A stretch of DNA of 64,000 nt from Scyliorhinus canicula (lineage: Eukaryota): the NCBI RefSeq assembly GCF_902713615.1, contig NW_024055461.1, positions 4,040,940-4,104,939 on the forward strand, written 5' to 3'. The first letter of the stretch is position 1, and every line of letters begins with the position of its first letter. Under the pieces are notes generated by a model, which was given only the letters and a program-made list of their open reading frames with translations, was not told where the DNA came from and ran no database searches. Below are positions 7,962 to 56,568 of the stretch, piece by piece. Position numbers and translations under genes: made by a program.

Positions 7962-8087
7962 CTTCACCAGAGTGACTGCAGCGCTGTAGGACATGCTCAG
8001 GAAGAACAGGGTGATGAATGTGGAGCGGTTGCCCAGATGTTCCGTTATCATCCTCATTGTCTTCAGTCCAGGTGTGGTCTGTGGCAT
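7962..8087 (-). pseudogene. IGHM: IgM TM1 (transmembrane) exon, frameshifted as written by two 1-bp deletions
   Basis: Acceptor ag at 8088-8089 and donor GTGAG at 7957-7961. Reads DATDHTWTEDNEDDNG, then in shifted frames (N)IWAT(A)STFITLFFLSMSYSAAVTLVK, the Ig CART-type TM motif. Exon is 126 nt where 128 nt would preserve phase. Confidence 0.88.
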
Positions 8088-15488: not shown

Positions 15489-15880
15489 TCATTGACATGA
15501 ATTAACGGTGTCCATCAGAGCGAGGGAAATGTTCACAAAACTGGGTTTACCGCTGGATTTATCAACCGTTCTGTTGATGATCTTCAAGGGGATGGCTTCA
15601 TGTCCCACCACACAGGAGTAAGAAGCGCCGCTGGCCCACTCCTCCGCTGCAATGGATAACAGGCTGTACATGAAGAAGGAGCTATTGCCGTTCTCCGCCA
15701 TCACCTCGGTGTTCTTGTAGTTCCCGGGATTCACCGGCTTGTCATTGACGGTCCACTTGACGAAGATCTCTCGGGGGGAGAAACCTCTCACTAAGCAGCT
15801 GAGGGAGACGAATCTCTGAGCGGAGACGTCTTCAGCCGAGGGCAGCAGGACAGAGACGGACGGTTCCCGCGGGTTGGGAT
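15489..15880 (-). CDS. IGHM: IgM Cmu4 exon plus secretory tail; internal donor for the TM form after 15551
   Basis: [43 protein letters not shown]...[23 protein letters not shown]|[20 protein letters not shown]. Acceptor at 15881-15882. G|GTAAA donor; tail has an NIS sequon and penultimate Cys. Confidence 0.97.
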
Positions 15881-17921: not shown

Positions 17922-18230
17922 CTATTTTTTTGTGGATTGAAATTCTTAAAGGAGTTGGCAGGTCCTGATGGCTCGCCACACATTCAAACTCAGCCCCACT
18001 CAGCCAGGCTTGTGTGGAGATGTTTAATTTGCTGACCACGCTCTCAGTATCTGCCCCAGGCTGGTCGGCAATCTCTGATTTCAGCAGCTTCTTCGCTTCA
18101 CTCCAGGACACGTTGACTCCAAAAGGAGCATTCGAAATGACGCAGGTTAAGGTTACAGTCGCCTCCAGTAAGACCTGTTCTATTGGCGGTGGCTGTATTG
18201 TTACTGAGGCATCAGTGCAAACGGAAGGAT
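17922..18230 (-). CDS. IGHM: IgM Cmu3 exon
   Basis: [43 protein letters not shown]...[22 protein letters not shown]. ag/GTGAG boundaries, 309 nt, phase 1. Confidence 0.97.
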
Positions 18231-19816: not shown

Positions 19817-20128
19817 CAGACGAGGCGATGTTCAGACTTTGGGTGACCTCTTGATGAGTGACCTGGCAGGTATAGACCGCTTTGCTGAACCATTCCCCAG
19901 CGGAGACTGTCAGCCGACTGCTCACTGAGAAGTTCCCGTTCACTTCATAGGCGGGAGAGGTGACAATTCCTGAACCCATGGGTTGTCCATTCTTCAGCCA
20001 CTTCACGTTAATTGAGTTTGAACGGAAATTGTTGATTGAACAGACGATGGTTGCAAATTTCTTGCTTGAGATTTCTTCATTGGAACTCACGGTGACGAGA
20101 ACATTTGGGGGGATGTCATTTCCACCAC
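19817..20128 (-). CDS. IGHM: IgM Cmu2 exon
   Basis: (C)[47 protein letters not shown]...[19 protein letters not shown]. ag/GTAAG boundaries, 312 nt. Confidence 0.96.
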
Positions 20129-20942: not shown

Positions 20943-21242
20943 ATTTCATTCCAATGCTCTTGTCTGAGCCTCTGTGTCGAACCTCACAGCTGATTTTGCT
21001 GCATCCCCCCTCTGACTCGGTGATGGTTAACTGGCTGCTCAGGGTGTAGGTTCCCTTCAAGTTTCTCACTGACGGGTATTTCTTAACACCAGTGGTGATC
21101 GGCTGCCCATCTTTCTTCCAGGTAAGTCTGGTGATTTCTGGGGAGTAGTCCATCGCCAAACAACCGTAGGTCACGGAGCCATCGGTGTTGTGTTGCTGAC
21201 AGGAGGAGACCAGGCTGTAGAGAGTGGGCGGAGACGGTGTCG
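20943..21242 (-). CDS. IGHM: IgM Cmu1 exon
   Basis: [15 protein letters not shown]...[22 protein letters not shown]...[18 protein letters not shown]. ag/GTAAG boundaries, 300 nt. Retains the N-terminal Cys typically used for light-chain linkage. Confidence 0.97.
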
Positions 21243-21589: not shown

Positions 21590-21770
21590 CTGAGTCTCCC
21601 TCCTTTTTAGAGTTTACTGGTGGGGATTTAACCTGAGCGTCACCACACCTCAGGCGAGAGGCAAGGTTGAGAATGGGAGTTTTCATGAATAACCTCAGCC
21701 GGTGCAGCAATTGAACCCGCGCTGCTGGGATCGCTCTTCATCACGAACCAGCCGTCCAGCTAACTGAGCT
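21590..21770 (-). mobile_element. tRNA-derived SINE (family differs from the V-SINEs)
   Basis: Minus strand AGCTCAGTTAG (A-box-like)...GCGGGTTCAATT (B-box-like), followed by ggctgaggtt...cctgaggtgtggtg body. Confidence 0.6.
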
Positions 21771-22354
21771 GTGTACGTCACAATCCAACTACCTGAGCTG
21801 TGTACGTCAGGATCCAGCTAACTGAGCTGTGCAGGTCACAATCCAGCAATCTGAGCTGTGTACGTCACAATCCAGCAATCTGAGCTGTGTACATCACAAT
21901 CCAGCTAACTGAGCTGTGTACGTCACAATACAGCTAACTGAACTGTGTACGTCACAATCCAGCGAACTGAACTGTGTACGTCACAATCCAGCTAGCTGAG
22001 CTGTGTACGTCACAATCCAGCTAGCTGAGCTGTGTACGTCACAATCCAGCTAGCTGAGCTGTGCACGTCACAATACAGCTAACTGAGCTGTGTACGTCAC
22101 AATCCAGCTAACTGAGCTGTGTACGTCACAATCCAGCTAACTAAGCTGTGTACGTCACAATCCAGCGAACTGAGCTGTGTACGTCACAATCCAGCTAACT
22201 GAGATGTGTACGTCACAATCCAGCTAACTGAGCTGTGGACGGCAAATCCAGCAAACTGAGCTGTGTACGTCACAATCCAGCTAATTGAGCTGTGTACGTC
22301 ACAATCCAGCTAACTGAGCTATGTACGTCACAATCCAGCTAACTGAGCTGTGTA
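21756..22354. repeat. 29-bp tandem array (TCCAGCTAACTGAGCTGTGTACGTCACAA)n, about 20 copies
   Basis: Directly visible; two AGCT motifs per unit. Confidence 0.96.
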
Positions 22355-23359
22355 TTTCACAGTCAACAACATTTTGTGATAAAGAAGTTGTATCTTCATT
22401 TATATCATTGCAGTTTTGGAAATTGCCTTTTTTCAAACTGACTGATCCCTCTCCTCTCTCCACCTCACTACCCCCACTCCCCAAAACACTCCACTTCAGA
22501 ATGCACACTTATGTAATTACAACAAATCTCTAAATTTGAGTAGTTGCAACATTCTCTAATTTTAGGATCATGCACATTAACAGCGGGAGGCGGCCATTCT
22601 GCCGTCGAGCCCCCTCCACCATTCAATAATGGCTGTGTTGATTGTTGTGTTAACTCCACATTCCTCCTGTCGCTGAGACCGGGCTGTGTGCCCCGCGTCT
22701 CTGTGCGTTTCCCCATCTCTCTGTGATTCGCGCTGGACCTCTGCACCGTTCACCTGCTCCTTTCACTTTCTTCCACATCTCGTTGTTCTTTGTCCACTGC
22801 TCGTCTCTTTCCCCAGTTCTTTGAATATTTTCCGGTTCCTGACACTTTCCATGGGCTGTTTGAACTTCTCGCCAGTATTTTGCGCTTTACCCCGATTCTT
22901 TTCGCTGATCGCCCGCTCCATGGACTTTCCTCCGGATAGCTGCAATTCTCTCAGCTCTCTGCGCCTTCACCGGCTTGGTGCACTACCCCCGGCTCTCTGT
23001 CCCTTTCCTCTGCTCTCTCTGCTTTCTACCAGCTCTCTGCCCTTTGCTACGGCTCCCTGTGCTTTCCCCAGCATATCTGCCCTGTTCACCACATCTCTGT
23101 TTCCCCCCACATCTCCGCTCTGTCCCTCACATCTCTGTGTCCCCCTCCCCCATTCCTGCCCTGTTCCTCGCCTCCTTGTTCTTTCCCTGGCCCTGGAAGT
23201 TACTCCGGCTCCGGCGCTTTCTCCCGGCTCTCTGAACTATCCTCTCCCGGGCCGCACAGACACTTTCGGGCGCCAGTCGTGCTCATGCCCCGCTCCAGTT
23301 CTCTCTTTCTCTCTCGTTGCAGACATTCGGGACCGATTTAGGGACCGTGCGTAAGAGAA

Positions 23360-25550
23360 TGAGTGAGTAACAGAGTGAGGGTTGGAGAGTGAGAGGGGGT
23401 GAGTGAGTTGGGTGATTGAGGATATAAGAGTGTGGATGAGTCGGAGATAATGGTTGATTGACTGAGTGATGGTAAATGGTGAGGGTGTGTCACTAAGGGT
23501 GAATGACTCAGGGTGGGTGAGGGCAGTAAATGAGACGTGGAAAATAAGTGAGGCCGAGTGAGTAAGTTTCGGAGTTGAGTTTGTTAGTGCAGTCGTGTAG
23601 TGAACATGAGAGCGAAGGTGAGTGAGTGAGGGTGGGAGAGTCAGGATGGGTTACTGTGGGTGAGTGACTGGGTGGGTGACTGAGTGAGAGTGAATGAGTG
23701 AGAGTGAATGAGTGAGGTGAATGAGTGAGGGTGACTGAGTGAGGGTGAATGAGTGAGGGTGAATGAGTGAGAGTGAATGAGTGAGGGTGAATGAGTGAGG
23801 GAGAATGAGTGAGGGTGACTGAGTGAGGGTGAATGAGGGAGGGTGAATGAGTGAGGGTGAATGAGTGAGGGTGAATGAGTGAGGGTGAATGAGTGAGGGT
23901 GAATAGGTGAGGGTGAATGAGTGATGGTGAATGAGTGAGGGTGAATGAGTGAGAGTGAACGAGTTACGATGAATGAGGTTGTATGAGTGTGGCTGAGTGA
24001 TTGAGGTGTTTAACTAAGAATTAGCGGATGAGCTTGGTTGTGTGAGGGATATGAGCGGCGAGAATGAGTGTGGGTGGGTGAAAATGAGGCAGTGAATGTG
24101 AGTGGGTGCGTGACTGAGGGTGATTTAATGAGGTTGGGTGAGTAAGGGTGAGCGAGTTAATGAGGGCGTGTGAGTGAGTGTGGGTGAATAAGGATGAGTG
24201 AGTGTGCGTAAGTGAGGGTGAGTGAGTAAATGTAAGTGAATGACAGTGTGTGAGTGTGAGTGCGAGTGGGTGAAAGAGGGTGGGTTAATGATGGTGTGTG
24301 AGTAAGGCTGGGTAAATGAGTGTGCATGGGGGTATGTGGGTGAGCGAGGGTGTGTGAATGAGTGCGAGGGCAGTGTCAGTGCGTAAGAGTGAGTCAGTGT
24401 GGGTGGGTGAATGAGGGTGAGTGAGTGAGGATGGGTGATTGAGTCAGGTGAGAGACTGAATGAGGGTGGGCGAAAATGAGTGAGGGCGGGCGTGTGAGGG
24501 TGGGTGAGTCAGTGAGTGATGGTGGGTGACTGAGTGAGGGTGAATGTGAGTGAGTGATGAGGGTAGTGTGAAGGTGAGTGAATTAGGTTGGTCAATGAGG
24601 GTGAGATAGTGATGGTGAGTGAGGGTGTGTGAGGGTTTGTGAGCGAGTGTGTGTGTGTGAGTGAGTGGTGAGGGTAGTGTGAAGGTGAGTGACTTAGGTT
24701 GGGCTAGTAAGTGTGAGCCAATGAGGGTGAGTGAGGGTGTGTGAGTGAGTAATTGTGTGTCTGTGAGTGTGTCTGTGTGAGTGAGTGATGGTGTGTATTT
24801 GAGTGAGTATGTGCGAGAATAAGTGTGTGAGTGAGTGTGTGTGAGTGAGGGTGTGTGACTGAGTGAGGGTGAGGGAACAGGTGAGTTAGGGTTGATGAGT
24901 TAGAGTGGGAGCGTACCATTGGCTGAAAGAGGGCGAGTGAGCGTGTGGGCCTGAGTGGGTGAGTGAGATTGGCAATGTGTGTAAGGGAGAGTGTGCAAGT
25001 GTGTGTGAGTGTGTGACAGAAAGTGTATGAGAAAGACAGCATGTGAGAGACAGGGTGTGTGTGTGTGTTGGCAAGAGACCCTTTGTATAAGTGTGTGTGT
25101 GAGAGTGTGTGTAAGAGAGAGAAAGGATATGTGTGAGAAATAGAGTGTGTGGGAGAGAGACAGTGTGTGAGAGGCTGGATGCGAGTGTGTGGAAAAGTAA
25201 GTGCGCGAAAGAGATAAAGTGTGCGCATTTATCTGTGGGAGTGTGCATGTGGGAGAGAGGGGGCGGAGATGAGAGAGAGGGTGTGAGATGATGTATGTGT
25301 GAGACAGATTCGTGTGTCTGACAGAATATCCAAGAGAGTGGTAGTGTGCGTGAGAGTTGGTCAGAGAGAAAAAGTGTGTGAGTGCAAAAAATGTGTACTT
25401 GTGTGAGAGTGTATTTCTGTGCAAGGAAGTGTTTGAGTTTGTGTGTGTGAGCATTTTCTCTGTGGGTGTGTGAGAGTGTGGTAAGAACGAGAGTGCGTAT
25501 TTGTGCTTTGAGAGATTGTGTGTGAGAGAGAGAACAAGAGAATGTGTCTG
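23360..25550. repeat. GAGT/GT-rich low-complexity tract, including 14-bp repeat (GAGTGAGGGTGAAT)n at about 23690-23960
   Basis: Directly visible. The His/Thr/Leu-rich ORFs at 24704-25904 are artefacts. Confidence 0.92.
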
Positions 25551-31117: not shown

Positions 31118-31165
31118 CTGCAGTCACCGTCACCATGGTCCCTTGTCCCCAGTAGTCTAGATAGT
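31118..31165 (-). CDS. IGHJ: JH gene segment (YLDYWGQGTMVTVTA)
   Basis: WGQG motif; GTAAG donor at 31113-31117. Confidence 0.97.
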
Positions 31166-31204
31166 CACAGTGTCACATTCCCTGGGCAGTTCCATACAAT
31201 AACC
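31166..31204 (+). promoter_or_regulatory. 23-bp-spacer RSS of JH
   Basis: CACAGTG + 23 nt + ACAATAACC. Confidence 0.95.
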
Positions 31205-31511
31205 GCACCTGCACAAAATAGACAGAAATCCACTTTATTTTAAATATTCACAAACCAGCAGCAAAAGAAAGCCAAGGTGAATGTTCATGAAATTATAATT
31301 GTATTTGTGGATATCGCTTGCTCTTCATAAATGTTTTACATTAAGAACATGTTATTGAAATCACCAACTGATTGGCGAATAATTATCACAGATTTTCCAC
31401 ATTTCTTCTTATCATTTGGACAGAGATGGATATATAAATAATACTTCACTATGAATAAAGTTGGATTGTAAAAGGGATCACTGAGTCAGCCTCAGTTCAT
31501 TAGTGCTGAGG

Positions 31512-31539
31512 GGATTTTGTATTGACACTAGCTAGTGTG
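31512..31539 (-). promoter_or_regulatory. 12-bp-spacer RSS 3' of the joined V-D(D)
   Basis: CACACTA + GCTAGTGTCAAT (12 nt) + ACAAAATCC on the minus strand. Confidence 0.85.
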
Positions 31540-31874
31540 CCCCCGCCCCCCCCACACCCCAGGTATCTGGTATCTTGCGCAGTAATAGACGGCGGTGTTT
31601 TCGGTCTTTAGGTTCCTCATGTCCAAAGAGAAGATGTTGTTTGAAGTGTCTTTGGACGCAGTAAATCGATCCTTAATTGCTGGGGTATAGATGTTGTCTG
31701 ATGAACTATAATAATATACCAAGCCCTCCAGCGCCTGTCCGGGAAGCTGGCGGAACCAGCTCATGTAGCCACTGCCAAGATTGAAGCCGCTGGTTTTACA
31801 GGTCAGTGTCAGGGAGCCTCCGGGACGCCCGGTCTCTGCCTCCGGCTGAGTCAACACAACATCCGACTGGACAC
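31540..31874 (-). CDS. IGHV: VH exon pre-joined to D/N sequence (VD(D)); open reading frame
   Basis: [101 protein letters not shown], then 33 nt ([11 protein letters not shown]). No 23-RSS after CAR. Confidence 0.95.
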
Positions 31875-32003
31875 CTGTAAAAATATATCAAAAAGCCCGA
31901 GGATTAATGCTGGTGAAATGATTGGTGACTCTGGGAACATTCCAGAGAGAGACTAACACTGAGACAGTAACAGTGAGAGACTTGGACAATAAAAACTACT
32001 CAC

Positions 32004-32049
32004 GGGATAAGAAAGTCAGCAACAAACTGAGAGAAATGGCCCACCTCAT
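32004..32049 (-). CDS. IGHV: VH leader exon (MRWAISLSLLLTFLS); an upstream in-frame ATG lies at 32061
   Basis: 46 nt, phase 1, GTGAGT donor, 129-nt intron to the V exon. Confidence 0.93.
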
Positions 32050-32140
32050 CCTTCTGGTCATTTGGGGGAAATGGTTGTGTCAGGAATTCAGTGAACAAAC
32101 CAGCTCCCGGACTGTTGGATTCGGGTCCCAGTGAGCGGCA

Positions 32141-32167
32141 TTTAAATACCCGGCAGAAGGGGGCGGC
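32141..32167 (-). promoter_or_regulatory. Putative VH core promoter (TATTTAAA plus GC box)
   Basis: TATA-like element about 80-90 nt upstream of the ATG and gggggcggc nearby. No octamer seen in the proximal region, consistent with what is known of shark VH promoters. Confidence 0.5.
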
Positions 32168-56245: not shown

Positions 56246-56568
56246 AGTTTTTGTTCGAGACTTTCCCTCGTTCCCATCACTGTGAGACTCTGTGCATAGT
56301 AATAGACCGCAGTGTCAGACAGCCGCAGCTCCGAGATGGTCAATCGGTACAACTTCTCTGATTGTTGGACGGTAACGGAAAACCGTTCCTGAGCGAAATC
56401 CGCCTTCAATTCAGCACCACCGCCCGTGTGCCTCCCGACTGCATTTTGACACAGCATTTTGCTGCTCAGAGGGAAAGACCAGTATAAATAGACAACTTTA
56501 TCTCTAATTGGCCTGAGCTGCAGCTTGGTCTCTAATTGTCCTGAGAGACAACTTGTTCTTTAATTGAC
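56246..56568 (-). pseudogene. TRAV/TRDV: TCR alpha/delta-type V segment (exon 56285-56568) with intact 23-RSS; defective as written
   Basis: VYLYW...DFAQERFSVTVQQSEKLYRLTISELRLSDTAVYYYAQS, with the second Cys read as Tyr. CACAGTG + 23 nt + ACAAAAACT. The 5' half is garbled. Confidence 0.85.

Follow-up and report, generated by a model that had tools for sequence, protein, structure and literature searches.

A catshark IgM heavy-chain mini-locus, most probably joined in part in the germline, with one deletional V-D(D)-J step left

Introduction

The question raised by this stretch of Scyliorhinus canicula DNA (64,000 nt, analysed as a whole and called the window below) is why an antibody heavy-chain V segment runs directly into a G-rich tract and a 12-RSS, and whether the gene to which it belongs is still fit for a last rearrangement. 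Partly pre-joined genes of this kind have been known in sharks since the 1980s. Partly joined VD-J and VD-DJ clusters and fully joined IgM clusters are established in cartilaginous fish, and their germline joining is attributed to RAG acting in germ cells (PMC5192425, PMC2193156); the first-pass annotation of this DNA, which stated that germline-joined classes occur in these animals and left the novelty of the gene open, thus referred to an established class and rightly withheld judgement. Germline-joined shark Ig genes are classic evidence for the action of RAG in germ cells in reshaping antigen-receptor loci in the course of evolution. No published annotation of catshark IgH was found in the literature searched. 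On the evidence presented here, the locus is most probably a catshark IgM heavy-chain mini-locus in a partly germline-joined V-D(D)-J state, one deletional join from completion; it belongs to a known class, and this copy is probably decaying.

Results and Discussion

Anatomy of the Locus

The whole gene lies on the minus strand and comprises leader, V exon, G-rich tract, 12-RSS, spacer DNA, 23-RSS, JH, Cmu1-4 and TM1 (Table 1). Other shark VH leaders begin, in the alignment, at a second in-frame ATG of this leader (32049); like the promoter, the leader is ~80% conserved with bamboo shark. The leader-V intron measures 129 nt, and its splicing is confirmed by splice joints in the RNA-rich runs X2 and X10. 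The second V exon encodes a V-set domain (PF07686, E 1.3e-18, domain search) with 63-81% identity to shark VH proteins. The cluster holds a single JH, equipped with a WGxG motif, a 23-RSS and a splice donor.

Immediately after the V end TGC GCA AGA a 23-RSS is absent. The 33-nt tract found in its place is in frame with V, contains no stop and encodes 11 residues. The pattern of the 12-RSS that follows occurs once in the 64 kb against 0.01 expected occurrences, and that of the 23-RSS twice against 0.00 expected, the second occurrence adjoining another V remnant; both RSSs are far beyond a chance match. The arrangement described by the first-pass annotation, with this V end, a G-rich tract of 33 nt, a 12-RSS and an unjoined JH, is confirmed to the base, and its estimate of about 310 bp between the two RSSs becomes a measured 307 bp.

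Table 1. Coordinates of the catshark IgM gene in the window, in the order of its coding strand
Feature	Position	Strand	Remarks
TATA-like box	32140..32148	-	TATTTAAAT; inside a promoter ~80% conserved with the bamboo-shark VH promoter (alignment)
Leader exon	32004..32061	-	MTRRMRWAISLSLLLTFLS; ATG at 32061; GT donor at 32003
V exon 2 (VH, V-set domain)	31573..31874	-	ends TGC GCA AGA; ORF intact
Joined tract, 33 nt	31540..31572	-	TACCAG + ATACCTGGGGTG (core matching D2) + TGGGGGGGGCGGGGG (G-run)
12-RSS (3' signal of D2 type)	31512..31539	-	CACACTA / GCTAGTGTCAAT / ACAAAATCC
D2-J intergenic DNA, 307 bp	31205..31511	-	homologous to the bamboo-shark D2-J spacer
23-RSS of JH	31166..31204	-	GGTTATTGT / 23 / CACTGTG
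JH segment	31118..31165	-	YLDYWGQGTMVTVTA; then GTAAGA splice donor
Cmu1 exon	20943..21242	-	AG/GT bounded, phase 1, C1-set domain
Cmu2 exon	19817..20128	-	AG/GT bounded, phase 1, C1-set domain
Cmu3 exon	17922..18230	-	AG/GT bounded, phase 1, C1-set domain
Cmu4 exon + secretory tail, stop	15489..15880	-	AG/GT bounded, phase 1, C1-set domain
TM1 exon	7962..8087	-	mu membrane motif spread across three frames

Elsewhere in the window, at 56246-56400 on the minus strand, an FR3 remnant of VH type (...RLSDTAVYYYAQS) has the second Cys replaced by Tyr, with a good 23-RSS (CACAGTG/23/ACAAAAACT) after it. Only its FR3 half matches antibody heavy chains, and it is probably a V pseudogene located ~24 kb upstream of the IgM cluster.

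The V domain itself contains unusual residues, specified by codons at 31723-31755 and 31597-31599 on the minus strand: F (WFRQ) stands where 10 homologues have V or I, G (LEGL) where nine homologues have W (LEWL), and N replaces D (TENTA). The F and G residues occupy positions that are altered in camelid VHH domains. As no differences are seen at the three codons in the contigs of X1 (~4-5 copies by depth) or in X13, which derives from another species, these residues represent a subfamily trait and not private decay.

Origin of the Joined Tract

The first point to be settled is whether the 33 nt were joined to V at all. The bare layout would also suit an ordinary germline V 3' sequence, with V naturally carrying a 12-RSS, an objection that the first-pass annotation had itself raised. 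V homologues in four shark species nevertheless stop at CAR(D) and pass directly into a 23-RSS: in the bamboo-shark cluster L001 the V end reads ...GCAAGAGAC|CACAGTG-23-nonamer, the germline V flank of nurse shark is TGTGCAAGAGAC (Malecek 2008, Fig. S11), and the V of horn shark HV01 ends in CAR. The tract is therefore not V sequence. Since it also contains a significant D2 core, and its 12-RSS is orthologous to the 3' RSS of D2, a natural V end of this form is vanishingly improbable.

The D2 segment of nurse shark is ACATACTGGGGTAG or a variant thereof, and a germline-joined sister gene of catshark carries ATACTGGGGTGG. The core of the tract, ATACCTGGGGTG, matches both, with p = 0.008 when the tract is shuffled and p = 0.0002 when the reference is shuffled; judged by this match, the core is of D2 origin. 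The conserved shark D1 is ATACTACAGTGGGT in nurse shark, and the identical 14 nt occur in bamboo shark and in a catshark sister (run X10). In the TACCAG portion of the tract it finds no significant match (p ~0.6), and TACCAG reads as a junction of 4-6 nt with a possible D1 remnant. Consequently, of the fusion of V, D1 and D2 that had been proposed, the part that concerns V and D2 sequence stands, and the participation of D1 does not receive support. A VDD-J gene in the proper sense needs a recognisable D1 and a recognisable D2, and here D1 is not recognisable. What is found is a V coding end contiguous with D-derived sequence, the V 23-RSS missing, as expected for a partly joined cluster, and a retained 12-RSS of D2 3' type, oriented for a deletional join to the 23-RSS of a J that is still separate. 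A V-D1-D2 join with a nearly erased D1 and a direct V-to-D2 join are equally possible, the 23/12 rule allowing both.

Two further candidates were rejected. Inversional joins of V or D1 to the D2 3' RSS do not agree with the forward orientation of the D2 core or with the intergenic DNA, which is 307 bp long, homologous to the D2-J spacer and free of any signal joint. The second candidate was L001 (BEZZ01001580.1, 6930-7290) as a D2 reference: this otherwise conventional V-D1-J cluster has no recognisable D2 between D1 and J, and the candidate stretch aligns to D2-J intergenic DNA.

The partly joined state most probably arose as follows. In a germ cell, deletional recombination of the RAG type would have fused V, trimmed to ...GCA AGA, to D-segment sequence, either as V-D1-D2 with D1 almost wholly trimmed away or as V directly to D2. 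The V 23-RSS and the signals 5' of D would have been lost in this join, whereas the D2 3' 12-RSS would have survived it and now faces the JH 23-RSS across the 307 bp. One more deletional join, with 374 bp excised, would give a VDJ exon whose Gly-rich CDR3 is fixed for the most part. Of such joins, about one third would be in frame; with eight G in the G-run a net gain of 1 nt would be needed, and with nine G the untrimmed join would already be in frame. The earlier suggestion that a single rearrangement is left agrees with these signals, because the pairing of a D2-type 12-RSS with a 23-RSS J satisfies the 12/23 rule and a single deletional join suffices. RAG in germ cells is inferred as the agent; Lee and co-workers showed such joining in 2000 for shark light chains.

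Comparison with Related Genes

The closest structural parallel is the bamboo-shark (Chiloscyllium punctatum) cluster L002 (BEZZ01000461.1, 3440-3920), a germline VDD-J cluster with recognisable D1 and D2. It reads V + GTATACTACAGT + AATTGGGCTGTAG + CACTGCA/12/ACAAAAACC, followed after ~340 bp by a 23-RSS J. It shares with the catshark gene the VDD-J layout, a homologous D-J spacer, the 23-RSS J and signs of decay, and the two 12-RSSs align base for base in heptamer, spacer (...CAAT) and nonamer (alignment). In contrast to the catshark gene, L002 retains almost all of D1 (GTATACTACAGT) and lacks a G-run, the ...GTAG end of its D2 abutting the heptamer. Its J contains an in-frame TAA (YLY*WGQG), and by its sequence L002 is another decaying, partly joined cluster.

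The VD-J and VDD-J clusters of horn shark (Heterodontus francisci) likewise inherit the V-D fusion with a separate J that bears its own RSS (PMC5192425, PMC2193156); they share the attribution to RAG in germ cells and the doubtful expression. The catshark gene differs from them in species and order, in its unrecognisable D1, in the G-run at the heptamer and in its frameshifted membrane exon. Fully joined shark IgM genes (nurse-shark IgM1gj, a catshark VDJ sister and whale-shark P0007) are also germline products of V(D)J joining. They need no rearrangement, and IgM1gj is expressed, whereas the catshark gene has a join still to make and gives no indication of being used productively. The VH pseudogenes of chicken, too, are germline V-D fusions that are not expressed as such (PMC2193156); they serve as conversion donors and lack the RSS, J and C that the catshark gene has.

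The catshark cluster provides a base-level example of germline joining, with comparators across orders (bamboo shark) and in a sister species (Scyliorhinus torazame). In the latter, the annotated protein P0001 (scyTo_0022151) runs past CTRD through a G/C-rich junction of ~24 nt into a translated 12-RSS with its flank, both homologous to those of the catshark gene (...QQLLSIQKAPQH); judged from this reading, P0001 is another V-D-12RSS gene.

Sister genes with other degrees of joining occur in catshark itself. A sister V (~82% identical) is linked to J by an identical 34-nt CDR3 (TTCATGGCAGCCTACAAAATACTGGGGTGGCGAA) in the DNA of X1 and in RNA-rich X2, and is thus a fully germline-joined, transcribed VDJ gene located elsewhere in the genome. 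A sister V in X10 continues ...TGTGCTGT + complete D1 (ATACTACAGTGGGT) + CACAGTG, i.e., V and D1 are joined and the 3' signal of D1 is kept.

Germline Status of the Junction

An unbroken short-read contig of run X1 (419 nt) spans 31235-31652 and reaches from intergenic DNA across the 12-RSS and the tract into 80 nt of V. At 8.37, its depth is close to that of neighbouring unique pieces (8.5-9.9), while pieces shared with paralogues reach 251. The D2-J intergenic DNA is unique in X1 and is also present in X2. In X1, no alternative path leads from the private letters of this V (31609, 31622) into a 23-RSS. Relative to the assembly, the X1 contigs carry a Val-to-Ile change at 31590, another difference at 31711 and a G-run of different length, and they look homozygous; these differences indicate that X1 probably represents another haplotype or individual. 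The mapping of reads across the junction, which the first-pass annotation had proposed, hence finds it bridged in X1 (tissue coded) at single-copy depth and not in minority reads. The contigs of X2, X10 and X13 have a gap over 31518-31553 and do not bridge the junction; X13 yields V and leader pieces that are ~99% identical, with no coverage of 31158-31553.

Single-copy depth combined with the assembly consensus makes a polyclonal somatic junction very unlikely. It is therefore very likely that the junction is inherited in the germline, as judged from the assembly and X1, both of coded tissue and individual. This coding of origin leaves room for a somatic VDD-J ('2R') intermediate from a lymphocyte, or an assembly chimera, having been caught in the assembly, all the more as no somatic intermediate is commoner than VDD-J in the lymphocytes and thymocytes of nurse shark (PMC2435157). 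The nurse-shark 2R form has an identical configuration, the same 12/23 logic and read-through RNA (Malecek et al. 2008, PMC2435157), but it is somatic, polyclonal and confined to lymphocytes, and polyclonal junctions cannot dominate a consensus. The catshark junction, by contrast, is found in the assembly consensus and is bridged in X1 at the depth of its flanks with no competing unjoined path and with SNPs relative to the assembly. Furthermore, the decay of RSS and TM1 is typical of an old germline allele, and genes of the same class are found in germline assemblies from two further sharks. A somatic or chimeric origin is thus highly improbable, and the germline join is retained below.

The X1 contig over the leader, the intron and the V 5' end (window 31844-32100) shows a depth of 251 against ~8.4 for unique sequence, which suggests ~30 near-identical copies of the VH 5' region in the genome.

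The G-Run at the Heptamer

The sole feature of the gene that goes beyond the known picture is the position of its G-run. Between the D2 core and the intact CAC of the heptamer lie 12-15 extra G/C nt (TGGGGGGGGCGGGGG), whereas the D2 segments of L002 and nurse shark run up to the heptamer with ...GTAG. Nucleotides added at a V-D or D-D junction would not land at this place, and the TdT-like G/C additions invoked for the joining step consequently offer no simple fit. Candidates for the origin of the run are a long-G variant of D2, replication slippage and an open-and-shut joint with G addition.

In the last case, RAG in a germ cell would have cut at the 3' signal of D2, TdT would have added G-rich nucleotides, and the end would have been religated to the same signal, a non-standard RAG event at the border of D2 and the 12-RSS. 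The exact location of the extra nucleotides speaks for such an event, as do the D2 ends ...GGGGT(A/G)G at or near heptamer or J in nurse shark, L002 and the catshark sister, and the G/C-rich somatic N regions of sister transcripts. On the other hand, D2 G-runs of nurse shark already vary from G3 to G5 between clusters (Malecek 2008), and the CDR3 of a sister gene contains ACTGGGGGGG, by which long-G variants of D2 may exist. Simple slippage is indicated by the difference in run length between the assembly (G8) and X1 (G9). Taken together, an open-and-shut joint appears distinctly unlikely. If true, it would be direct genomic evidence that germline RAG/TdT in sharks makes aberrant joints besides coding joints.

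The homopolymer discrepancy itself is located at window 31546-31553 (coding strand: G8 in the assembly, G9 in the X1 contig). If G9 is the true length, the tract has 34 nt instead of 33, and its frame relative to J is shifted.

Constant Region, Transcription and Probable Decay

All four Cmu exons are open, with correct splice sites, and the membrane form has a cryptic donor inside Cmu4, G|GTAAAC at ~15551/15550. The membrane exon TM1, in contrast, is distributed over three reading frames (acidic linker / NIWATA / STFITLFFLSMSYSAAVTLVK). With the human and mouse mu TM sequences of PMC6304377 and PMC9860311 as references, the human mIgM TM peptide finds its best match within the window in STFITLFFLSMSYSAAVTLVKV, which lies in frame -3 at 8024-7956 (E 5e-6, tblastn). 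The residues preceding it in the reference, NLWATA, match NIWATA in frame -1 at 8041-8024, which overlaps the frame -3 match by one base, and the acidic linker, in phase with the cryptic donor of Cmu4, occupies the third frame. TM1 is 126 nt long (0 mod 3), whereas entry in phase 1 and exit in phase 0 need 2 mod 3. Two apparent losses of a single nucleotide would account for this in the assembly sequence, where an assembly error is possible. As TM1 is frameshifted within the conserved mu TM motif, no membrane IgM can be encoded from the assembly sequence. A HMMER search with the TM-frame peptide for a shark mu-TM reference returned spurious matches only, P0024 being an unrelated repetitive protein.

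Run X2 represents RNA, as is apparent from its leader-V splice joints, its J-Cmu1 splice ends and a V depth in the thousands. The unique D-J intergenic stretch is also represented in it (identity over 271 nt, depth 11-14), and its depth over the leader intron is zero. This combination agrees with spliced read-through RNA from the unrearranged gene rather than with DNA carry-over; such a transcript would end at a TAG just inside the RSS. The proposed search of RNA for the CDR3 prefix joined to JH gives no J-to-tract joint in the contigs of RNA-rich X2 and X10, which are gapped there; VDJ joints of sister genes are plentiful in X2. The heptamer CACACTA keeps its CAC, deviates at two further positions and is accompanied by a nonamer that deviates at one.

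The readiness implied by the first-pass annotation, which saw the gene as waiting for its D-to-J join, is not borne out, with TM1 frameshifted in the assembly, the heptamer weak and no rearranged transcript seen. From the same weak heptamer, frameshifted membrane exon and lack of a completed rearrangement, we infer that the gene is on its way to becoming a pseudogene. It could instead be a functional one-step gene, selected as a semi-invariant, innate-like heavy chain and expressed, for instance in neonates. In favour of this view, the V ORF, J, Cmu1-4, secretory tail and promoter are intact and conserved, the locus is transcribed, the unusual FR2 residues common to sister copies and another species hint at constraint, and nurse-shark IgM1gj (PMC5192425) offers a precedent. 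Against this stand the frameshift in the mu TM motif, by which the assembly sequence gives no membrane receptor, the deviations in heptamer and nonamer, and the J-to-tract joint missing from two RNA-rich runs despite the many sister VDJ joints; moreover, joined H genes of horn shark were historically not found expressed (PMC2193156). A functional role is thus unlikely, and decay of a partly joined gene is the preferred reading. The catshark cluster would then show the usual fate of such genes, in which transcription persists although the signal is weakened and the membrane exon broken, and for repertoire work its V gene is to be annotated as partly joined and probably non-functional.

In the J-C intron, ~500 bp upstream of Cmu1, a 29-bp unit (TCCAGCTAACTGAGCTGTGTACGTCACAA, 91% matches) is repeated 21 times at window 21755-22361, and arrays of a 14-nt unit (GGTGAATGAGTGAG and variants) occupy window 23617-24873 in the J-Cmu1 intron, with a GC skew of up to 0.64; the latter are G-rich on the plus strand, hence C-rich on the coding strand of the gene. 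Retroelement ORFs of reverse-transcriptase and endonuclease types (3.7-5, 9.4-11.9, 44-49, 50-52.6 and 57.5-60.9 kb) flank the cluster and also sit between Cmu4 and TM1, and a proline- and serine-rich, coding-like tandem array is located at 0.3-3.3 kb of the window.
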